In this document: one piece after another, positions 11,106 to 57,336 of the stretch
Numbering within the stretch: the stretch's first letter is position 1
Layout of the letters: each line of letters starts with the position of its first letter
From: Hyaloraphidium curvatum SAG 235-1
Taxonomy: Eukaryota > Fungi > Monoblepharomycota
Assembly (NCBI GenBank): GCA_025558095.1
Contig: JAIVFI010000004.1
Location: 248,001 to 312,000 of the forward strand
DNA length: 64,000 nt
Reading direction: 5' to 3'
Notes under the pieces: model-generated
Seen by the model: only the letters and a program-made list of their open reading frames with translations
The model's database searches: none
What the model was told of the DNA's origin: nothing
Position numbers and translations under genes: made by a program

Positions 11106-13261
<2,156 letters not shown>

Positions 13262-13538: not shown

Positions 13539-16500
13539 ATGTGGCTGCTCGACGTGAACGTCCCCGCCATCGAGCCCGAGGACGGCGAGGGCGAAGGCGC
13601 GTCGCGGCAGTGCCCCGCGCCGCCCCGCTGACCCCCCCGCAGCGACGCCCGCCCGCAGGTTCACCGTGTGGCTCAAGCCGGGGAACAAGTTCGTCGTCGG
13701 CAGGAAGCGTGAGTCGCTCCCCCGCACCCCCCGGGCACCCCGCCCACCCCCGCATCGCCCCAGCGACCCGCAACGGGGCGGACCCCAACAAGATCGTCAT
13801 CCCGCAGAAGAGCATCTCCAAGGCACATGCGGAATTCGTCGTCGGCCAAGCGGCCCTGGACGAGGTGCGTGGGCACTTCTCGCTTACCGGCACCACCTGA
13901 CGCCCCCACTTCCCCGCAGAACGGCAACGTCCCGCGCCCCACCGTGACCGTGCGGGACCTGGTGTCCAAGTACGGCAGCCACGTCAACAATGCTCAGATC
14001 AACGAGACCACCCCGCTGGCGGAAGGGGACCGGATCGAGCTGGGCGAACCCGGGTTCGAGGACACGGTCTTCCTGACGTGGGCCGCCCTCCCCTGCCCGG
14101 CCCGCGGCCGCCTGACCGCCCTCGCCCAGCCTGCAATGGCAGCCCCTGATGCTCGCCATGTCCGGCTTCCGGAAAACCCAGAAGGCCAAGGTCAAGGAGG
14201 ACTGCGCCGAGCTGGGCATCGAGTGCCACGAGGGCAAGGGCATCGCCCCCGGCACGGACATGCTCCTCGTGCCCAACCTCAGGGTCACGGCCAAGGTGGT
14301 CCAGGCGCTCATGTCGGTGCTCCCGCTGGTCACGGAAAAGTACGTCGACGCGCTGAGGGAGGCGCCGACGGTGGAGTTTTCGATGCCGGACCCTAAGGAG
14401 TGGGTGGCCCGGTCGCCGCCGTCTGCGCGGCAAAGCCGACAGGTGTTCCGCAGCTACTGCCCCACCGAGATTGCCGACGACCTGGTCTCGGCCTCGGCTT
14501 CCGCCTTCCACCCGAATCCCGAGAGGAAGAAGCTGTTCGAGAACAAGGTCTTCGTCTCGATCCTCCAGGACCAGGTGAGGCGCCGCACGCACGCACGCAC
14601 CGTCTCCTTCCGCTCACTGCCCCCAAGTACGAGCGTGTGCGCTTCCCCGTCGAAGCAGGCGGCGGCCAGATCCAGCTCGTCCGCGCCGAACCCGGCGTCA
14701 CCGCCGCGGAGCTCGTCACCCGCATCGCCCGCATCCCCTACGCCGTCCCCCTGGACCCCGCCAACGGCGACGAGCTCGGGTACGAGACCGAGGCCGCGCG
14801 CACGGCGATGGCGGCGCGGTTCGCGCGGCTGGTGGGGGAGCAGGAGATCGCGCACGCGGTGGTGCACTGCTCCACGGAGCTGTTCTGCAACCCGGAGCTC
14901 GCCTACGATCCGCTGCCGGGGCAGAGCCAGGCGTCGGTGATGGCGAGCGCGGTGCAGGGCGCGGGGCCGGCGGCGTCGGGGAGGCCGCCGGCGGGACCGC
15001 AGGCGTCGGGCAGGCAGGGAGGGGCGGCGTCCGCGGGGCCGTCGAACAGGGTGGAGCAGCCGCAGGAAGAGGCGCCCAAGGCGGCCGAGATCGAGATGCT
15101 GGTCGGCATGCCGAAGAAGGTGCGTTTTCGTGCCTGTGCCGTGCCCCGATTCCCTCCAACTTGATCTCGTTTTGGCAGGCAACAAAGACGTCCAAGAAGC
15201 CGATCAAGATGGACGACTTCCTCGACTCGCTCATGGACCAGGTGGAGGTGCAGGCGCAGTCGCTCCCCCAAGGCGACAGCATCGCGTCGCAGGACCGGAG
15301 CGGGCGCAATTCGGGCGGGGACGACTCTGGCGGGGCCAAGCGCCGCGCGTCGCTCGAGGACTCGGGCCACGTCACCTCGGGCTCGCAGGCCTCGCGCCCG
15401 GCCAAGCGACCGAAGCTCGACGCCGTGGACAGCGTGTTCGGGGTGGAGGAGGAGATAGCGCCGGAGCAGGTGGCCCCCGCGCGGGGTCCCAGGCGGCTCA
15501 CGGGCGGCCGGGGGTACTCGCAAGCGGCGCCGGCGCCGGCGCCGACGGCGGGGCAGCCGAGGCAGTGGTCGCAGACGGTCCGCCCGCAGATGGAGGTCGA
15601 GGAGGCGCCGGACGCGGCCATCGACGTGGACGAGCAGCCCGAGTGGCAGGACGCCCCCGAGAGCATGTACAAGCCGCTGCAGCCGGGCGATCCGGGGTAC
15701 GACTACCTGCACGAGGAGCCCCCGGATGACGACGACGACAGGGTCGGGTTTGAAGACATGGAGCCGGCGACGGGCGCCAAGGGCAAGAAGACCGCGAAAG
15801 TGGCGAAGCCCGGCTTCACCATGAAGCCCGAGAAGGTGGCCGAGATGGCGCGCAAGGCGGTCAAGGCGCGCAAGGACGCGAGGCCGGAGGACAGGGCGCT
15901 GCTGGAGCTCAACGAGCAGATGGGCGCCATCAAGGTCTCCATCGGCGCCAAGGTCTTTGAAACTCCGAAGCCCACGCGGGTCGAGGCGCCGCCGAAGAAG
16001 GGCAAAGGCAAGGGGAAGGAGAAGGAGGGGGCCACGGACATCCCGAACTTCAAGAGGTTCCGCAAGGTGCGACGGACTTCTTTGTTCCACTCTTCTGATG
16101 GCTCATTCTCTTTGCGCGGCGCAGAACTTGCAGGCCGATCGGAACCATCCCGTGCTCAGGGAGACGATCAACTGCGTGGTCGCGACCCGCGACGACGAAT
16201 GGTCAGATCGCGTGTGGCTGCAGGAGGCCGAGGACCCGCAGCTGAGGAGGCGGGTGGCCGGCTCGGCGCCGCAGGGCATGCAGTACCGCAACATCGAGGA
16301 GCTGCATCGGGAGCCCGACGAGGACGACGAGGAGCGCGAGCAATTCGACGACGACAACGCCTCGATCACGTCGCGCGCCAAGAGCAGGAAGGGGGCGAGC
16401 GCGTACGGCGACGACGACGCCCACTCTGTGTCGCGGTCGACCGTGCGTTCTCGCGCGACGAAGCGGCAGCGCGTGGGGAGCGACGACGAGGACTCGCTGA

Positions 16501-40461: not shown

Positions 40462-40935
40462 ATGGCTGCGCTGCAGGGCTACGATGGCTACCCTCCCGAG
40501 CCGTGCACGGAATGCCCCGAGTGCGACAACTTCCTAAAAGGCAGAGTGATCAACATCTGCGACTGGTGCGGCCATAATGCCAGTGTGCACAAGCCGAACC
40601 AGCAGGCGGCCGGTAAGATTCCCTGCTCGGCGCGTCTCCTCGCGCTTACCTTCCCAGGCCCTTCACACATTCCTGCGTTCAAGTACCATGGAATGCCTCC
40701 ACGACCAGGCCTTGGACCGCAAATGGGCCAGCAGGCACCCAAGCCGCCCGCGCCACACTCCGTGTTCCGGACCGCGATGGCTGCGCCGACGGGCTACGAC
40801 CCGAGTGGCTACCCTCTCGAGCCGTGCACGGAATGCCCCGAGTGCGACAACTTCCTTGAAGGCAGAGTGATCAACATCTGCGACTGGTGCGGCCATAATG
40901 CCAGTGTGCACAAGCGGAACCAGCAGGCGGCCGGT
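40462..40935 (+). repeat. Near-identical duplicated coding module (40462-40614 and 40777-40935)
   Basis: Both copies begin ATGGCTGCG, encode CTECPECDNFL.GRVINICDWCGHNASVHK.NQQAA and end at an equivalent splice donor; only a few nucleotide differences in the core. Confidence 0.92.
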
Positions 40936-43204
40936 GAGTGGTCTGGCTCGCGTATCTCGGGCCGGTGACATCAAGCCGTCATCCTCTCCTCTCCAGTAAT
41001 GTCGTACAGACCGGCCGCTTCCGATGCCTGGGTTCTGCGCTACGGGCTTGACGCGCAGATGAAGCTTCGCGCGGATTGCAGGAACTGCGACTGTGCGGTG
41101 TACGCGCGGCAGAGCATGGGGAATGGTTGCGGGAACCCGAAGTGCCGCCACCTCTCGACCGATCACCGCCGTGGGATCATCTCCCGCAGTACAGCATTGT
41201 GTGCATTGACCACGCTGCACCTTAGAGGTCATTGAGTTCTGCGAGATCGACAGACCCTACTACGAGTTCAGCAATTCCTACGTCTCCCCGTTCCTCGACG
41301 CAGAGGGCAAGCAATGGGCGACTTCGGAGCACTATTTCCAAGCGCGCAAGTTTTTTCCACACGCACCCTGGTTGATGGAGCAGATACGGAGGCTGCCGAC
41401 TCCGCGTGATGCGTTCGAGCTCGCTCAACAGCACCGGGCGCAGATGCGGCCCGACTGGCATCAAGGAGAGTCCCTCAAAGTCATGAAGGAAGCCGTGCAC
41501 CGCAAATTCGTGCAGAACAATGAGCTCCTGGTGAAGCTTCTGGACACGGGGGACGCGTACATCGTGGAGCACACTACCAATGACGCGTACTGGGGAGACG
41601 GAGGCGGCAACGGCCGTGGCCGCAACGAGCTCGGGAAGGCGCTCATGCAACTTCGAGACGAGCTCAATGGAAGGGTCCGCCAACCGATCAAGGATCCGAC
41701 CGCGAGACCGCCGGAGCCCGACCGGCGCCAGGAAGCAGAAACTGAGGCGCGGCGTCGCCGGGAAGAAGAGCTGACGCGCGAGCACCAAAGGTTGGAGTTC
41801 GAGCGGCTGCGGGCGGCGGATCAGGCTCGGGAGGCCGAGCGAGCGCGTATAGCAGAGGCCGAGCGCCAGAAGAAAGATGCGGAGCAGGAGGCGGCACGGC
41901 TGCAGCAGCGCGAGGCGGACAAGGCGGAAGCCCGCAGGAGGCACCAGCAGCTGGCCGACGAAGCTGCCCGCGTGCGGGAACAGGAGGCGGAGGTGGCCCG
42001 CCGCATGGAGGAGCTCCGGGTTCGGGAGCAGGAGGTGGAGAGGAGGAAGGCTGAGGTTGAGGAGATGGCCAAGCTCGCCCCCCTTTTGCGTGCAACGCCC
42101 TCCTCGGACTCCTCTGAGGCAACCAAGCTCCCCTCGGAACCCTCCCGATCGGATGAGGCGACTAAGCTCCCCTCGGAACCCTCCCGATCGCGTGCTTCCT
42201 CGGGCAGCGCCAAATCCGACCATGCGGCCTTCCTCTCCAAGCTCCGCATCACGAAGGACGAGGTGGCTTACTCCACCGACGCCACGGCAGTTCTCGGCGA
42301 GGGCAGCTTCGGCATCGTGTACCGCGGCCTGCTCAGAGGCGCGACGCGGGTTGCCGTCAAGGCGATCAAAGGTGACGTGACCCCCGAGACGGTGGCGATG
42401 TTCCTCAAGGAGATCGCGGTGTGGGACGGGCTGAATCAGCGGAACGGTGAGCCCTCGAGCCGTCTTTCGCCATCACGGGCTTAATCTTCCCCGCAGTGCT
42501 TCCGCTCCTGGCGTTTTGCGAGTCCCCGCCCCTACTGATTTCGGAGCTGACCGAGGGCAGCATGCGCTCCCGACTGGACGCGCTGCGCTGGGACCAGGCC
42601 GTTGGGCTCAGGTACCTTCGCGGGGTAGCCGCAGGGATGGCCTACCTGCATTCCTACAAGGTGCTCCACGGGGACCTCAAGTGTGCCAACATCATGATCG
42701 GTGGGACTGCCGGGCGCATCTCGGGTCGCTCATCTCATCCGGGCAATGGCAGACCACGACATCCCCAAGATCGCCGACTTTGGCCTCGCCAAGGTCCGCT
42801 CCCACCTCTCCCTCGGCTCCACCCGCGGCGACGGCGATGCCACCGGCGGCGGCGGCGGCACGCCCCCGTTCATGGCCCCCGAGCTCTGGCGCGGGGGCAA
42901 GCTCCGCACACCCGTGGACGTGTACGCGTTCGCGATGGTGTGCTACGAGGTCACCGACGAGGGAGGATACCCTTTCGAAGGGCTGTGGATGGCGGCAGTG
43001 GGTGGTCCTGCACGCCGGATTTGATCGATCACTGGAGTTCTTTTCCTTTGTAAGGTCAGCGAGGCCGTCCTGCGTGGGGACCGCCCCGAGCGCCCCGACA
43101 ACGCCGATGACAAGATGTGGGCGCTCATGGAGCGCATGTGGGCGCAGAGCGCGGCCGACAGGCCGACGTTCGTCGAGGTCTGCGCGGAGATGGAGCGGTG
43201 GTAG
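40462..43204 (+). CDS. Fusion protein: Cys/His repeats - NADAR (YbiA/RibX) - coiled coil - TKL-type protein kinase
   Basis: Phase-compatible GT-AG introns 40613-40657, 40934-40996, 41189-41225, 42447-42496, 42701-42752, 42998-43054. NADAR motifs FSN, SEHYFQARK, EHTTNDAYWG, GRNELGKALM. Kinase motifs GEGSFG, VAVK, HGDLKCAN, DFG, MAPE. Confidence 0.85.
42114..42190 (+). repeat. 39-bp in-frame tandem repeat (EATKLPSEPSRS x2) in the kinase linker
   Basis: Two copies of aagctcccctcggaaccctcccgatcg, 39 nt apart. Confidence 0.85.
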
Positions 43205-45912: not shown

Positions 45913-46489
45913 CTAAGAAACGGACCAGTCGGCCGATATCGTGCACTCCCCCACGATGTTGCCAATGTTATCCGGGACAAAGAGCAGCGCGTTGAGCGAG
46001 TAGTTGCCCCGCTCCGTCCACTCTTCCGGGTACTGTTCGTGCGCAGTCAACCCGGCAATTCGCATCAGTTGTCTGCCCAGGGGCGGGGGTAGCCAAGCAA
46101 CCCACAATGACCTCATTCACAGCAAACGCACCCCAGCTGAACGTCCCCAGCTCCGACGCCCCGACGCTCCCGTCAAACAGCGAGGTATCCCCGCGGCGGA
46201 TGGAGACCGAGACGCTGCAGCGTTCCAGGAATACGTTGTCGGTGGGGAGGTCGGACCATGTGACCGTGGCGCGCACAGGCTGGCCCTGCGGGTATCTGTC
46301 AACTGTGCGATGTGCGGGCGCCAAGATCGCGCGTGTGATCTGTCGCACCGGGACGGGGGGGTTCGTTTCGCAGGACACCTCGATGGAGTAGTTCTTGGTG
46401 AAGCTGGGCGGGTTGTTCCCGGAGAGCGGCCGCGACGTGAACTCGTTGAACGTGAAAGTCCCGAAGCCGCGGACGGCGCCGACAGACAT
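45913..46489 (-). CDS. Small beta-rich orphan protein
   Basis: ORF MSVGAVRG..AVNE can splice (GT..CAG, ~46033-46110) to YPEEWTERGNYSLNALLFVPDNIGNIVGECTISADWSVS*. Confidence 0.55.
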
Positions 46490-46559
46490 GGCGCGACAAT
46501 CAGTGCGAAGGACGACGCGTGACGAGCGCGGCTCTCAGTCTAATAGCGGCGTTGTCTCG

Positions 46560-46856
46560 AATCTCGGCACACGCGAGGTGTGGTCCGCCGGACGCGGACG
46601 CGGCAAAATCTCCTTCGGCGGCAGAGTGGAAAGAAGTCCGAGGTCTGCAATCAACGCCGGCGGCCGGTAGAAGCTCCCGATCATGTTCTTCCCTGCAGTA
46701 TGTTGACGCCCGTCTTGCCGCCCACCGACAAATCGATCATGGAGGAGCGTTGTCGGCACCTGAACGAAATCGATGCCGCGCTGATCGCAGCCGCGAACCC
46801 TGCATGTCGTTATCGACACCGCCTTCCAACACGACCACGAGGGCGCCGCGGTCGAA
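46560..46856 (-). pseudogene. aroB: Decayed partial copy of 3-dehydroquinate synthase (aroB)
   Basis: Aligns by eye to 56306-56585 (e.g. gtggaaagaagtccgaggtc, ggtagaagctcccgatcatgttcttccc); encodes [14 protein letters not shown] and [10 protein letters not shown] with frameshifts and an insertion. Confidence 0.9.
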
Positions 46857-46888
46857 ACCTTCGTTGCCGATCCCGATCGCCCTCCATT

Positions 46889-48760
46889 TCACGCGTGCAG
46901 CATCGCCGACTGCAGCACCACTCCGACCGTCTGCGCGCCGCCCCCGGGCCGGTACTTGGCGTCCACGTTCTGGCACAGCACGTGCAGCCTCGGATCCCTC
47001 CCCAGCCTGTCCACCAGCTCGTCGAACCTGACCCTGTGCGGATCCTCCGCCAGCGCGTCGACCACGGCCACGGTGCACATGCCCTGCGACCGGCGGCCCC
47101 CGAGGTTCATGTCCAGCCCGGGGCCGACGTTGCCGATCAGCGCCGTGCGCGGGGGCAGGTCCGAGGCAACGGCAAAGGTGAAGCAGCCGTCGAGGATGAC
47201 GAGCTTGCGGCAGCGCAGGTCGCCGAGCGCGGGGAGCATGGCCGAGGGCTTGAGGAGGCCGCCTTCGACGACGAGGCTGCCGTCTTCGGTGCCGTGGCCC
47301 GAGTAGTGCAGGACGAAGAGGTCGTCTTTGCCGAGCTGGCCTCCTTCCTGGGCGATGGCGGCGCGGATGGCCTTGGGCTTGGCTTCCCTGCCGAAGAGCT
47401 TGGTGGTGGTGAAGCCGCGCTTCTGCAGTGCGGAGCGCATGACGTCGAGGTCGTGCTCCGGGCCCTGGAGGTTCCCGCCCGAGTGGCCGACGAGCAGGGC
47501 GCGGCCGCGGCCGGGCTGCACGGCGACGGACAGGCGGAACTTTTCGTTGCCGCCCAGGGTGATGACGGAGCCGTCCTTGAGCGGGACGTGCTTGCCCGGC
47601 TGCGCTTTGGTGCCGTCGACCAGGGTCCCGTTGGACGAGTTGAGGTCGACGATGGAGAAGCCGTGCCTGCCCTTGGCATTCTCGGGCGGGTACAGGAGCG
47701 CGTGGTTCCTGCTGATGCGGATGTTGTCCGAAACCATGATGGCCAGCTGGGCGTCGCGGATGTTCCCCGACAGCGCGCGCGCGCCGTGGTCCTCGACGCC
47801 CTCGGACCTGCCGAGGTGCACGACGCAGTCGACGGTGAACTCGGGCCCGCGCGGGTTGCCCGACGAATCGAGCTGCCTGAGCTTGCCGACGGTCTCGCCG
47901 GCGCGGGCATGCACGGGCCGCGGCGGAGTCGGCGACACGGGCCTGCCCGAGCCGAAGGCGTCGAACAGCTTGCGCACCTCGGGGCTCGTGGCGACCTCCG
48001 CGGCGGTCCTGCCGGCCTTGTTCCTGCGCCTGACGTCGACGCGGTCCGTGCGCGAGAGCAGCAGCTTGACGGCGACGTCGTGGCCGTTGCGGCTGGCGAC
48101 CATCAGGCCGGTGTTGCCCTCGAGGTCGACTGCGTTAACGTCGACGCGCGAGCTGCCGAGCAGCAGCAGCAGCACGTTTGCTGCGTCGCCGTTGAGGCAG
48201 GCTGCGATGAAGCCGGTGTCGCCGGCTGCGGTGTGCACGTTGACGTTGACGCGGCGATCGGCCAGCAGCAGCGCGACGACCTCTGAGCGGCCGGTTGCGC
48301 ACGCGGCCACGAAGGGCGTGTAGCCGCCGTCGTCTGCCTTGTTTGCGTCCGCGCGGCCGTCGAGCAGCAGCGCGCCGGCGACGTCCCCGTGGCCCTCCTG
48401 CGCGGCGACGAACAATGCCGTGCGGCCGTCGGCGTCCGCCGCGTCTGCGTCGACGCGGCGATCGGCGAGCAGCGCGCGCGCGGCGTCCGCGGCGCCGAGG
48501 CTGCACGCGACGAGCAGCGGCGTGGCGCCGCCCGGCCCGGCCGCGTCGGGGTCGACGCGGCGATCGCCCAGCAAAACACGCACGGCGTCCGCGCTGCCGC
48601 CCATCGCCGCGTAGTGCAGCGGCGTCGCGCCGTCGCCGTCGCGCGCCGCGGGGTCGACGTCGGGCCGCGCGAGGAGCTCCCGCATCCGCGCCACATCGCC
48701 GCTCGCGCTCGCCTCGAACAGCTTGAGCGTCTTGGTCGGCTTGGACCCGTTGTTGCCCAT
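46889..48760 (-). CDS. Ankyrin repeat - FHA - caspase-like (peptidase C14) protein with N-myristoylation motif
   Basis: MGNNGS start; ~7-8 ankyrin repeats (GATPLHYAA, GRTALFVAA, GNTGLMVAS); FHA LGRS..ISRNHA..SSNGTLVDG; caspase RALLVG, HYSGHG, VILDGC; intronless. Confidence 0.88.
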   Translation of the reverse strand: MGNNGSKPTKTLKLFEASASGDVARMRELLARPDVDPAARDGDGATPLHYAAMGGSADAVRVLLGDRRVDPDAAGPGGATPLLVACSLGAADAARALLADRRVDADAADADGRTALFVAAQEGHGDVAGALLLDGRADANKADDGGYTPFVAACATGRSEVVALLLADRRVNVNVHTAAGDTGFIAACLNGDAANVLLLLLGSSRVDVNAVDLEGNTGLMVASRNGHDVAVKLLLSRTDRVDVRRRNKAGRTAAEVATSPEVRKLFDAFGSGRPVSPTPPRPVHARAGETVGKLRQLDSSGNPRGPEFTVDCVVHLGRSEGVEDHGARALSGNIRDAQLAIMVSDNIRISRNHALLYPPENAKGRHGFSIVDLNSSNGTLVDGTKAQPGKHVPLKDGSVITLGGNEKFRLSVAVQPGRGRALLVGHSGGNLQGPEHDLDVMRSALQKRGFTTTKLFGREAKPKAIRAAIAQEGGQLGKDDLFVLHYSGHGTEDGSLVVEGGLLKPSAMLPALGDLRCRKLVILDGCFTFAVASDLPPRTALIGNVGPGLDMNLGGRRSQGMCTVAVVDALAEDPHRVRFDELVDRLGRDPRLHVLCQNVDAKYRPGGGAQTVGVVLQSAMLHA

Positions 48761-49065
48761 CGCGGTTTGCTGATGACTGATTGCGAGCACCGACGATGAG
48801 GACGACGTCGAGGCGGTGAGACTGATCGCGATCGCGGGGAAACTCCAGCACCCACCGCCTTCCGCCGATCTCGACGTAGAGGCACTCGAGGCAAGACCTA
48901 TGAAGGAGCAGTTCACTCTCTTTCGCGTTCGCGTTATCACTCGCAGCAGTGGCGGCGGGTCCAGACCGTCTCCCAGCCGCAATCGCGATCGATGCCTTGA
49001 CTGACTGACTGACTTTGCCCTGACTTTACCCACGACCGTTGCGGAGCACATCCGGCCCGCCAGAC

Positions 49066-52000
49066 ATGGACGGCCGCGGGTACGGCTTGGACGGTTCGGT
49101 AGCCGTGCCGATGTCCGACCTGGACTGGACGTCGAACCCGCTCGCCGCGCCGTTCGCCCCCGTGGCGCCGCGCGGCACCCCGTTGGCCGCGGACGGCCCC
49201 GGGGCCGGGAGCCCCGCCCCGGCGCTGGCGGCGTACGCTCCCGTGCCGCCCCGCGAGCCCCGGCGCTACGCGCCCATCACGGATTTCCCCAAGCGCTCCG
49301 TGACCACGAAGAAGATCCCGCTCACCGAGAAGGGCAACCTCCAGAGTGAGTGCTCCCCGGCGCGGCCCCGGCCCCGCAGAAGCGGGATTGGCATCGAGCG
49401 TAATGCTCAACCGCGTGCCAAGTCGACCTTCCGGTGCCGACCGACGTCCTCAACTACGTCAGCATGGACCCAAGCAAGGAGTTCACGCACATGCGGTACA
49501 CGGCCGTGACATGCGATCCCAACGACTTCGATCACAAGGGGTACACACTGAGGCCCGTTACTTACGAGCGAAAAACGGAACTGTTCATCGTCGTAACCAT
49601 GTGGGTACCGCAGGCATAGAAGCGGCGCGCCCGGAGAAGCTGCACGCTGATCTTGATGCTCGCTCGCCGCCACCAAGGTACAACGAGGCTCCACAACTCT
49701 TCATCAATACGATGGTAATGGCGTTTGCCGTCCCACTGGTGTGAGGCGGCTCACGTCGATCGTCGCAGCACGCCATAACTACCAACGTCAAAAACTTCAT
49801 GGCCCGAGAGAGCTCCCAGACCTGGGGCGAGGACGCGTGGCAGAAGATCGTGATCTGCGTGGTGGCAGACGGTGCCGATTACATCCACACCAGAACGCGG
49901 GACCTGCTTGCCCTCATGGGCTGCTACCAAGACGGCGTGATGAAGACAAAGTTCGGGGACGAGGACGTCACGGGCCATTTGTTCGAGTACACGACGCAGG
50001 TGGACCTGGATCGGAACGGGAACGAGCTCATTTGCAATTCTGGACCGCCGGTGCAGATGATGTTCCTCATCAAGGTTGGCGCCCGGACGCGGGTCATCGT
50101 CGAGAGTGCGCTCACCTCTCCAACAGCAACAGAACACCAAGAAGATAAATTCGCATCGCTGGTTCTTCAATGCTTTCTGCCCCGTCTTGAATCCCAAAGT
50201 CACCATGCTCATCGACGTTGGCACACGCCCGCTGGATACGTCGCTCTATTACCTCTGGAAGGTCTTCGACAGGCATCCCAATGTTGGCGGCGCCTGCGGG
50301 GAGATTCGGGCCGATATTGGCACTGGGTGGTACAAGTGCTTCACCAACTGGTTGGTTGCGGTTCAGAACTTTGAATGTGCGTCCTGCGAGCGCCCGATTT
50401 ACATCCGGGCACTACTGATCGCACTGATCAACAGACAAGATGTCCAACATCCTGGACAAGCCGCTCGAATCCTCTTTCGGCTACATCTCCGTGCTCCCCG
50501 GCGCGTTCTCGGCCTACCGGTACGAGGCGCTGAAGTCCCTTGATGACGGCACCGGACCGCTCGCATCCTACTTCCTGGGCGAAGACATGCATTCGGGAAA
50601 GGTTGAGGGCGGCGTTTTCAAGAACAAGTGGGTCCGCCACCCCATGCTCACCAACCCGCTCTCATGCCTGATTGTCCCCGCCACGCCTTAGCATGTACCT
50701 TGCCGAGGATCGCATCTTGTGCTTCGAACTCGTCGCCAAACGCGGTCAATCCTGGACGCTCCGCTACGAGCGCCGTGCCGCAGGCGTAACCGACGTGATC
50801 GAAGAGATACCGGAGCTGCTGAAGCAACGCCGGCGGTGGCTCAATGGGTCCAACTTCGCGGCGTTCTACGCGTTGCTGAATTGGGGAAGGATTTGGAAGT
50901 CGAGCCACTCGACCGGGAGGAAGATCGTTTTCATGCTTGAATGGGTATACCAGCTTCTGGTGATGCTTTTCAGCTGGTTCTCGATTGTAGGGCAGCTCAT
51001 CCGTCACATGCGGCACCTTTCGTTGACTGACGAGTTTGCCGCAGGCAAACTTCTTTCTGGCTTTCTACTTCCTCATGGAAGCAACGGTTCCTCAAACCCT
51101 TTCTACGCCCGGTGGCACCCTCCAGGGCGCGTATCGACCGCCCTTCTACGAAGGCTCGGAGGTCGTCTTCCAAGTCTTTACGTGGATCTACGTGCTGCTC
51201 ATGCTCGTGCAGCTTATCATCTCGCTCGGTAACAGCCCGAACGGCTCAGTGAACGTGTACCGGTTCCTTGTCATTCCCCTCTGGGTGCTCATCATGGCAA
51301 TCATCCTGGCTCTCATCGGCAGCAACCTGTACTTTGTTTTCAGCACGGTTGCTCAGCCGGGCGTCAATGTCGGGCAGCTGCTGCTGAGCGTGGGTCATCT
51401 GCTCGCCGTCGTATGTCTTGGACCCCAAGATCTGACTTTCTGTCGCACCAGAGCCCGAACTTCCAGGCCACCATCCTGGGTCTGGGTTGCACCTTCGGCC
51501 TGTGGATCCTCGCTTCGATCCTATTCCTGGACCCGTGGCACATGGTGACATGCTTCCTGCAGTATCTCCTGCTAATGCCATTTTGGGTGAATGTGCTGCA
51601 GACCTACGCCATGTGCAACACGAACGGTCAGTCTGGAATCGTGGATCCGGTGGATCCGCAGGCACATGGCTGATGCATCCACGAACCAGACGTTTCCTGG
51701 GGCACAAAAGGTGACACTGAAGCTCCCAAGCACGACGCTGACAATGCTGTGAAGCTCACAGGGCCTGCTGACGGCCGTGAGGCGGAATTTAGTGTGCCGG
51801 ATGCAAGCAAGAAAGACGAGGCCAATGCTATCTACCGGGCTCTGTTGGCGGAAAGCCAGACTCTGAACGATAAAGATAGGAAGGACGAGTCTCCCGAGGG
51901 CAAAGAGAAGGAGGCGAAGAAGAAGGCTGAGGCCGAGAAGAAAGCCAAGGAGGAATATGCAAAGGCGGGTGTTTGCCTCGGATCCTCCACGGAAAGCACG

Positions 52001-55723: not shown

Positions 55724-56872
55724 CTACAAAACCGCTGCTACACCTTCCCGGGCCACGTCGACCGTAGCATGCTCCACCGGCACCGTCGCATGAGCAGCCA
55801 GCGCCTTGGCCAGGGCATCCTGAGGCACCGTTCTCACGATCGCCTTTCCCAGGCCGTCGAGGAGCACGAACTTGGGCACGCCCGCGGTGCTCTTCTTGTC
55901 CGTGCTCATCAGCTCCAACCACTTGGCCAGGGACCACGCGGGCGCCCGCACCGGCAGCCCGGCGGCGGAGATGGCCGCACGAAGCCGGGAGAAGGCTGCG
56001 CGGTCGAGCAACCCCAGCACGACAGAAAGCTCGGCGGCCAACACCATGCCAGCGCCGACGGCCTCGCCGTGCAGCCACTCCCCGTAGCCTATGCCGGCCT
56101 CGATGGCGTGGCCGAAGGTGTGGCCAAAGTTGAGGATCGCGCGCAGGCCGCCCTCGCGCTCGTCGAGGCTCACGACCTCGGCCTTGATCTCGCAAGACCG
56201 GGCGACGGCCTTGGCGAGGGCGGGAACGTCGCCAGCTCGCAGCGCAGGCATGTCCGCTTCAACGGCAGCCAGGTACGCCGTGTCGCGGATCGCGCCGTGC
56301 TTGACAATCTCGGCAAGGCCGGCGGAAATCTCCCTGGGCGGCAGCGTGGAAAGAAGTCCGAGGTCCGCAATCACCGCCTGCGGCTGGTAGAAGCTCCCGA
56401 TCATGTTCTTCCCCGCAGGATGGTTGATGCCCGTCTTGCCGCCGACCGACGAGTCCACCATAGCCAGGAGCGTCGTCGGCACCTGGACGAAATCGATCCC
56501 ACGCTGGTATACCGCGGCCGCGAACCCTGCCATGTCGCCGACGACTCCGCCTCCTAAAGCGACCACGAGCGCGCCGCGGTCGAACCGGGCCTCGAGCATC
56601 GCGTCGAACGCCGCCGACAGAGTTTCCCAGTCTTTGTGAGCCTCTCCGTCGCGAAAGGCGACCTCGATCACCTGCTTGGCCCCCTGCACGGCCTGCCGCG
56701 CTCGCGCCGCGTACAGCGGGCCGACGACATCGTTCGTGATGATCGCGACCTGGCGGCCCGCGGCGAGGCGAGAGAGGGTGCCGCCGGGTGCGAGCAGGCC
56801 GGATCCGATCTCGATGCCGTAGGCGCGGTCGCCCAGCTCGACGCGGACGGTGTGCAGCGGAGCGGAGGCCAT
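55724..56872 (-). CDS. aroB: Stand-alone 3-dehydroquinate synthase, bacterial type
   Basis: [69 protein letters not shown]; intronless; not fused to other AROM domains. Confidence 0.95.
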
Positions 56873-57336
56873 TGAAGAGGAATGGAGATGGCCGCCGCCT
56901 CTTTCTGGTCGGAGTAAACAAGCCGAAGCGATCGCGTCGGTCATCCGGACGCTGGCCTGCACTGCCTCCCCCGAAACTTATAGTGCGCCCGGCTCCTCGC
57001 CCCTCCCAATTTCAATACCAGCAAGTCATCTGGAATGTCAGTAGATGATCTAGAGAAGTGGACGTCGCATCATGCTTGTCGGGAGCAAGTGGAACGAAGG
57101 GCGCTGGAGAGGACGTTTCCATTTCAGCCCAGCCCCAGGGCCGTTGCGCCTATGCGAGCAATGCAGCTTCTCGATATCTTTCCAAGGGTCTGACATTTTC
57201 GGAGATTTAGGAGCGAGGTTGATTTTGACGCATCCGTCCTTGGGGCTCCCATGTCCAGCCAGGTCCGATGGACCCGCAATCGAATCGCCTTCGCGCGCTC
57301 CGTGGCGCGCCTGACTCCTGGCCTCATCCCGACACG

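Follow-up and report, generated by a model that had tools for sequence, protein, structure and literature searches.

The Hyaloraphidium curvatum SAG 235-1 contig JAIVFI010000004.1 carries, at positions 46889-48760 (-) of the window analysed here (a stretch of 64,000 nucleotides, positions 248,001 to 312,000 of the contig), a single open reading frame of 623 codons. Its 623 aa product comprises, from the N- to the C-terminus, the sequence MGNNGSK, eight ankyrin (ANK) repeats, a Pro-rich disordered linker, an FHA domain, a caspase fold and a disordered tail (Table 1). An identical 623-aa model is on record in NCBI nr. The ATG at 48760, which the first-pass annotation had taken as the start codon, is supported both by this model and by codon periodicity. 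GC3 amounts to 0.94 over the whole ORF and 0.88-0.97 in each 120-nt bin including the ANK-FHA linker, whereas the in-frame 291-nt extension 5' of 48760 shows GC1/2/3 values of 0.51/0.64/0.66 and no codon periodicity; the step-up in GC3 falls on the ATG itself, which lies in the context GCGATGG. A 720-aa ORF starting with the ATG at 49051 was dropped because the extension lacks coding periodicity and this ATG lies 15 bp from that of a divergently oriented chitin synthase gene (49066). The caspase and chitin synthase genes thus have a 305-bp upstream region in common.

Run X1 was taken as RNA since its contigs carry GT..AG joints; the contigs give neither the strand nor the start of a transcript. 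One contig is unspliced over 46348-47760 and runs through the stop codon, and a second is unspliced over 48118-48400. A third extends from 48677 into the chitin synthase gene, spanning the whole intergenic region as well as 84 nt inside the caspase ORF (48677-49066), and hence the 5' ends of both transcripts overlap or one of them starts inside the other gene. The contigs cover most of the ORF and none is spliced within it. The absence of introns noted in the first-pass annotation therefore holds for the first two stretches, and the gap between them (47761-48117) is without contig coverage. This gap contains the ANK-FHA junction and its linker, so that the support for the junction is the continuous coding signal and not RNA. 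Contamination or an assembly chimera was ruled out by the spliceosomal introns of the flanking genes, the host-like codon usage and the RNA contig that leads from the 5' end of the gene into the chitin synthase gene. The gene is genuine, transcribed and single-exon, and the wider reading that includes fusion and acquisition is held with moderate confidence.

Past the stop codon lie a fragment of aroB, a small spliced gene and a gene with a SIR2_2 domain (Table 1). The aroB fragment is 75% identical over 61 aa to an intact stand-alone aroB at 55727-56962, which points to a local duplication or rearrangement. The small gene directly downstream of the caspase gene has a GC3 of 0.84 in its spliced form, and its unspliced ORF has no Pfam match. 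One RNA contig runs across both this gene and the caspase 3' end, which means that the two transcripts overlap or read through. The N-terminal third of the SIR2_2 ORF is without a Pfam match, and the exact ORF is absent from the protein collection. Approximately 34 kb from the caspase gene there are two further family matches, ~1 kb from each other, namely a second one to TKL kinases and a second one to FHA.

Table 1 Features of the ANK-FHA-caspase gene and of its surroundings (window positions)
Feature	Position	Strand	Details
Start codon and MGNNGS (Lys at 7)	48743..48760	-	N-myristoylation consensus; residues 1-6 disordered in the model
Ankyrin solenoid, residues 9-270	47951..48736	-	8 helix pairs, 7 G-x-T-x-x repeat cores; Pfam Ank_2 E 1e-35; pLDDT 85-98
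Pro-rich disordered linker, residues 271-289	47894..47950	-	Fusion point of ANK array and prokaryote-type module; pLDDT <50 at 272-287; GC3 0.95-0.97
FHA domain, residues 290-414	47519..47893	-	R318, S350, H353, N377-G-T; Pfam FHA E 4e-13; strands in both models
Caspase-fold (clan CD, C14) protease domain, residues 419-596	46973..47506	-	His489 at 47294-47296; Cys526 at 47183-47185; acidic D437, D524, D550
Disordered C-terminal tail, residues 597-623, and TGA stop (46889-46891)	46889..46972	-	ORF and model
aroB (3-dehydroquinate synthase) fragment	46535-46819	-	70-350 bp past the caspase stop, within the transcribed 3' region
Small spliced gene, ATG 46489 to ~45916	45916-46489	-	Two GT..AG introns, ~46285-46347 and ~46033-46105; ~146 aa spliced
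SIR2_2 neighbour ORF, 590 aa	43945-45717	-	ThsA-like (Thoeris) SIR2, PADLOC E 4e-23; Pfam SIR2_2 E 3e-24
Second TKL-kinase match / second FHA match	12556-12948 / 13938-14045	- / +	Genome coordinates G000:C4:260556-260948 / 261938-262045; whole-genome family searches

Domain architecture and predicted fold

The first-pass annotation had read an MGNNGS N-terminus, an ankyrin array, a complete FHA domain and a C14 protease with intact His and Cys from the letters alone, and all of these elements were recovered. MGNNGS is present and is followed by a lysine (M1-G2-N-N-G-S6-K7), the eight repeats are recognised by Pfam Ank families and seen in the model, the FHA match covers residues 337-403 with the motifs G317-R318, S350-R-N-H353 and N377-G378-T379, and the catalytic residues sit in S487-G-H489-G and D524-G-C526. 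The full-length model has a pLDDT of 85. Its N-terminus is free over residues 1-6, and the ordered parts are the eight ankyrin helix pairs, an all-beta FHA domain and a six-stranded alpha/beta protease domain. The G-R, S-x-x-H and N-G motifs are placed on the predicted all-beta FHA sandwich with all phosphothreonine-binding motifs kept, and a family-specific insert of ~12-15 residues separates GR from SRNH.

Pfam Peptidase_C14 (PF00656) matches residues 418-517 with 35.1 bits against a cut-off of 21.4, covering profile positions 1-111 of 233 only. This partial match is attributed to divergence and not to truncation of the protease, since the model contains six strands and aligns over the full domain. 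The model of the module can be superimposed onto Arabidopsis metacaspase-4 with a Z score of 18.0 (183 residues aligned, rmsd 3.0, 26% identity), and gives Z scores of 16.8 for GSU0716, 16.6 for MALT1 and 16.5-17 for caspase-6/7 and legumain over ~175-185 aligned residues. MALT1 is the top match in Foldseek (E 1e-7), and the closest solved structure by sequence profile is GSU0716 (PDB 3BIJ; E 8e-15, 26% identity). The protease domain is thus predicted by the model to be a complete caspase-hemoglobinase fold.

N-myristoylation follows the PROSITE pattern G-{EDRKHPFYW}-x-x-[STAGCN]-{P}. The Gly2 site G-N-N-G-S-K fits this consensus, and the N-terminus is exposed in the model, with pLDDT <50 for residues 1-6. 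The pattern is a common one, and as such the match hints weakly at lipidation.

A family of prokaryotic FHA-caspase proteins

Residues 290-623 are the end-to-end counterpart of stand-alone prokaryotic FHA+C14 proteins of ~350 aa, and the link with bacterial multidomain caspases that the first-pass annotation had drawn holds. A word search with residues 300-623 returned 14 proteins of 343-401 aa that combine FHA and C14 and share 30-37% identity with the fungal protein. A HMMER search across all 1.84 billion protein representatives gave 402 matches at E<=1e-3, of which 89 reach E<=1e-10 and 17 reach E<=1e-30, with a top identity of 39%. Nearly all of these are 330-400 aa long and align from query residue ~5 to ~293 of 323. 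The end-to-end match to the stand-alone proteins has an E value of 2e-45 and 35-39% identity. Neither an ankyrin-fused nor a eukaryotic relative was found among the 1.84 billion representatives; because this library holds fungal and EukProt proteomes, the absence carries weight for eukaryotes as far as they have been sequenced. The ANK+FHA+C14 architecture accordingly occurs in no other protein of this search, and the H. curvatum genome contains one copy of the module.

The representative of the 90% cluster of the fungal protein (P0179) is a peptide of 57 aa (P0180) that is unrelated to it and comes from an AT-rich bacterial contig with an EAL gene (L103), which is why the fungal protein is missing from the results of representative-based searches. 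The peptide was rejected as a relative and is regarded as a database clustering artefact.

In the alignment the FHA and dyad residues are invariant, S-G-H489-G and D524-G-C526 being identical in 15 family members. The stretches SRNHAL(I/L)YPP, GHxGGNL, SGHG and ILDGC as well as the insert between GR and SRNH are common to the family and the fungal protein. A nearly invariant family loop after the catalytic Cys, K-A-Y-E-G, reads P-G-L-D-M at fungal residues 547-551, where the acidic residue is kept as D550. To judge from the sequence, this change could result in a weaker or altered S1 pocket.

The named family members belong to Candidatus Peregrinibacteria and Candidatus Woesearchaeota and most homologues are unlabelled metagenomic proteins. 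The family has no name, and its members are labelled 'FHA domain-containing protein' or 'caspase family protein' at NCBI. All ten genomic contexts of homologues are prokaryotic, with ribosomal operons, gyrase, archaeal Spt4/S24e/S27e and sigma factors nearby. A genome locus search with a 7-row alignment recovered one locus only, in a Peregrinibacteria MAG. The module found no match in a scan of viral contigs, and a metagenome scan gave distant generic caspase matches of <=33% identity and no close relative. No PADLOC or NCBIfam family matches the module, caspase matches being sub-threshold only, and ESM Atlas feature hits all score <0.8 and serve as leads only. Surveys of the Aravind group list FHA and caspase, each on its own, among the effector-type domains of conflict systems, and no description of the FHA-caspase family or of the fungal ANK-FHA-caspase architecture was found in the searchable literature. 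The prokaryotic family is rare and apparently undescribed.

In an unrooted tree of 62 rows the fungal copy is nested inside a 30-row clade with an SH-aLRT support of 93. It sits on a long branch (1.55 compared to a median of 0.96) and is paired with another long branch, which makes its exact placement unsure.

Two bacterial loci are possible natural contexts in which the module could be studied. In one (L001, 7108-9107) only 3 bp separate the FHA-caspase gene from a PP2C phosphatase gene in front of it, and in the other (L002, 5652-11604) it lies between a Ser/Thr kinase gene and a pair encoding TPR and STAND-NTPase proteins.

Possible mechanism, genomic context and origin

The reading preferred on balance is that of a host-type ankyrin array fused to an entire prokaryote-type FHA-caspase protein, probably an active protease that would dock via its FHA domain. 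The N-terminal half looks home-grown. At least 70 similar ankyrin stretches occur in the genome, the nearest of which are 35-50% identical, and six of the nine ANK arrays tested belong to ANK+TKL-kinase genes. As the ankyrin half resembles the arrays of the genome itself and the remainder resembles prokaryotic proteins, the gene is viewed as the product of a fusion in which an imported module was joined to a host array.

Genome-wide, ankyrin genes fused to TKL-type kinases are expanded (e.g. L088, L091, L092, L095), which is unusual for a fungus. For the PK_Tyr_Ser-Thr (TKL) family, the 642 first-look candidates in 31.9 Mb yielded 149 scored matches.

The caspase-fold domain is probably an active cysteine protease. 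It lacks a long inter-subunit linker and for this reason the enzyme is likely to be single-chain, like proteins of the GSU0716 type. The S1 residues of MALT1 are Asp365, Asp462 and Glu500 (PMC4357240). In the fungal protein D437, D524 (two residues before the Cys) and D550 occupy the corresponding motif positions, the equivalence being one by motif. Three acidic S1-type positions suggest cleavage after Arg or Lys, and a P1 preference for these two residues is therefore likely. It is proposed that the FHA domain acts as a recruitment prodomain that would dock the protease on a phosphothreonine-marked partner, and such docking may serve to select substrates or to raise the local concentration of the enzyme. 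The ankyrin array would constitute a second docking surface of the same type as in the ankyrin-TKL kinases of the genome. Phosphorylation gating is plausible in view of the conserved FHA residues. A myristoylated Gly2 may in addition hold the protein at the membrane, the basis for tethering being the consensus motif on an exposed N-terminus.

Paracaspase-type proteins act partly as scaffolds. By analogy the fungal protein could be a pseudo-protease, which would keep the caspase fold for interactions only and use its ankyrin and FHA domains as adaptors in kinase signalling. The replacement of K-A-Y-E-G by P-G-L-D-M in the substrate loop and the long branch in the tree would agree with such a role. 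It is nevertheless unlikely, as the His-Cys dyad, the SGHG and ILDGC motifs and the three acidic pocket positions are all kept, and GC3 and the integrity of the ORF argue for ongoing selection for coding.

In a similarly improbable scheme, the three genes for NADAR-kinase, Macro-SIR2 and ANK-FHA-caspase form an immune or cell-death island, with the preferred active protease as its executioner. The kinase would phosphorylate either a target or the protease, the FHA domain would read the mark and the membrane-bound protease would kill. The scheme draws on the adjacent gene with its defence-type SIR2 domain (Table 1), on the NADAR-kinase gene located 3.7 kb away at 40462-43204 and on the two bacterial loci described above, where the homologue lies beside a Ser/Thr kinase and a STAND NTPase/TPR pair or directly after a PP2C gene. 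Against this, SIR2, Macro and NADAR neighbours are found in none of the ten prokaryotic contexts, eight of which also have no kinase or phosphatase, and several homologues are situated among housekeeping genes. In H. curvatum the small spliced gene and the aroB fragment stand between the caspase and SIR2 genes, the abundance of TKL kinases means that one should turn up at a distance of a few kb rather frequently, and the module belongs to no PADLOC or NCBIfam defence family. The suggestion of the first-pass annotation that the NADAR-kinase activates the protease finds no support for much the same reasons, given that two genes lie between them, TKL kinases are very common and a kinase or PP2C gene accompanies only two of the ten homologues (one Ser/Thr kinase, one PP2C). 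Nor do two contexts out of ten support a conserved kinase partner. A search of the fungal genome for gasdermin (PF04598) gave no match, with the controls silent too. The broadest version, in which a prokaryotic protease wired into the host ankyrin/TKL network as a membrane-anchored, pThr-recruited executioner would form, together with a ThsA-like Macro-SIR2 NADase, a eukaryotic immune/death island built from prokaryotic parts, is likewise unlikely.

As for the origin of the preferred fusion, its relatives make a bacterium or archaeon the most likely source of the module, which would have been acquired long ago. Codon usage is fully host-like (GC3 0.94), which indicates that the transfer is old and that no donor can be named. 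An old prokaryote-to-fungus transfer, a direction that we infer, is the most economical reading. Very unlikely is the view that no transfer into the fungus took place, and that the gene is ancient, vertically inherited and lost in nearly all other eukaryotes or moved from a eukaryote to prokaryotes, for although the wholly host-like codon usage, the lack of a close donor (top identity 39%) and the unrooted tree leave room for it, a library with fungal and EukProt proteomes holds no eukaryotic relatives and ~90 diverse prokaryotic representatives surround one fungal copy.

Activation of caspase-fold proteases usually depends on recruitment domains, CARD, DED and death domains among them. In the present case a phosphothreonine reader would take this role, and the unit of reader and protease makes up a compact protein family in uncultured bacteria and archaea. 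Among the 1.84 billion protein representatives no member other than the fungal copy is eukaryotic or fused to ankyrin repeats. This copy would be a clean example of how a eukaryote captured a prokaryotic module and equipped it with a targeting array of its own. What is new, as far as sequence comparison goes, is the unique ANK-FHA-caspase architecture, its link to the FHA-caspase family and the host-type ankyrin array. The module of ~330 residues is also a tractable system for the phosphorylation control of a caspase-like enzyme.

Comparison with known systems

The prokaryotic stand-alone FHA-caspase proteins resemble residues 290-623 from end to end, including the FHA insert, the motifs and the short single-chain caspase domain. 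The fungal protein differs from them by ~290 extra N-terminal residues (a myristoylation-type start, eight ankyrin repeats and the linker), by its altered K-A-Y-E-G loop and by its occurrence in a eukaryote as part of a larger protein and not as a stand-alone one of 330-400 aa.

MALT1 shares with the fungal protein the caspase fold (Foldseek E 1e-7, Z 16.6), the three S1 motif positions with their acidic residues and the joining of a protease to protein-interaction domains, a combination that serves kinase-driven signalling in MALT1 and may do so in the fungal protein. Unlike MALT1, the fungal protein has neither a death domain nor Ig domains according to Pfam and the model, and identity between the two is 16-19%. 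Recruitment would proceed via the FHA and ankyrin domains rather than via a CARD/BCL10 filament.

The term 'metacaspase-like' used in the first-pass annotation is appropriate insofar as the clan CD fold, the His-Cys dyad and the acidic pocket are shared with fungal type I metacaspases such as Yca1 and the copy encoded by H. curvatum itself. It is imprecise in that the fusion contains a prokaryote-type FHA-caspase module, lacks a Pro/Gln-rich prodomain and has a catalytic domain of ~180 aa without the C-terminal (p10-like) region of metacaspases. The canonical metacaspase of the genome is a separate gene (G000:C10:735754-736635) that matches Pfam C14 positions 1-224, compared to 1-111 of 233 in the fusion. 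Its product agrees at 100% identity with an H. curvatum protein at NCBI, and its next-best named matches come from other fungi, two chytrids among them.

GSU0716 (PDB 3BIJ) and bacterial orthocaspase-type C14 proteins are close in their protease part, GSU0716 (E 8e-15, 26% identity, Z 16.8) being a bacterial homologue of caspases that consists of a single chain and is itself uncharacterised, but they have neither FHA nor ankyrin domains. A bacterial protein with a C14 domain followed by two FHA domains (P0122) is distant (E 2e-8) and differs in domain order, whereas a cyanobacterial FHA+CHAT cluster of the Atlas, a feature-level match of <0.9 only, differs in its protease family. These two examples show that the pairing of a phosphothreonine reader with a caspase-like protease arose repeatedly in bacteria.
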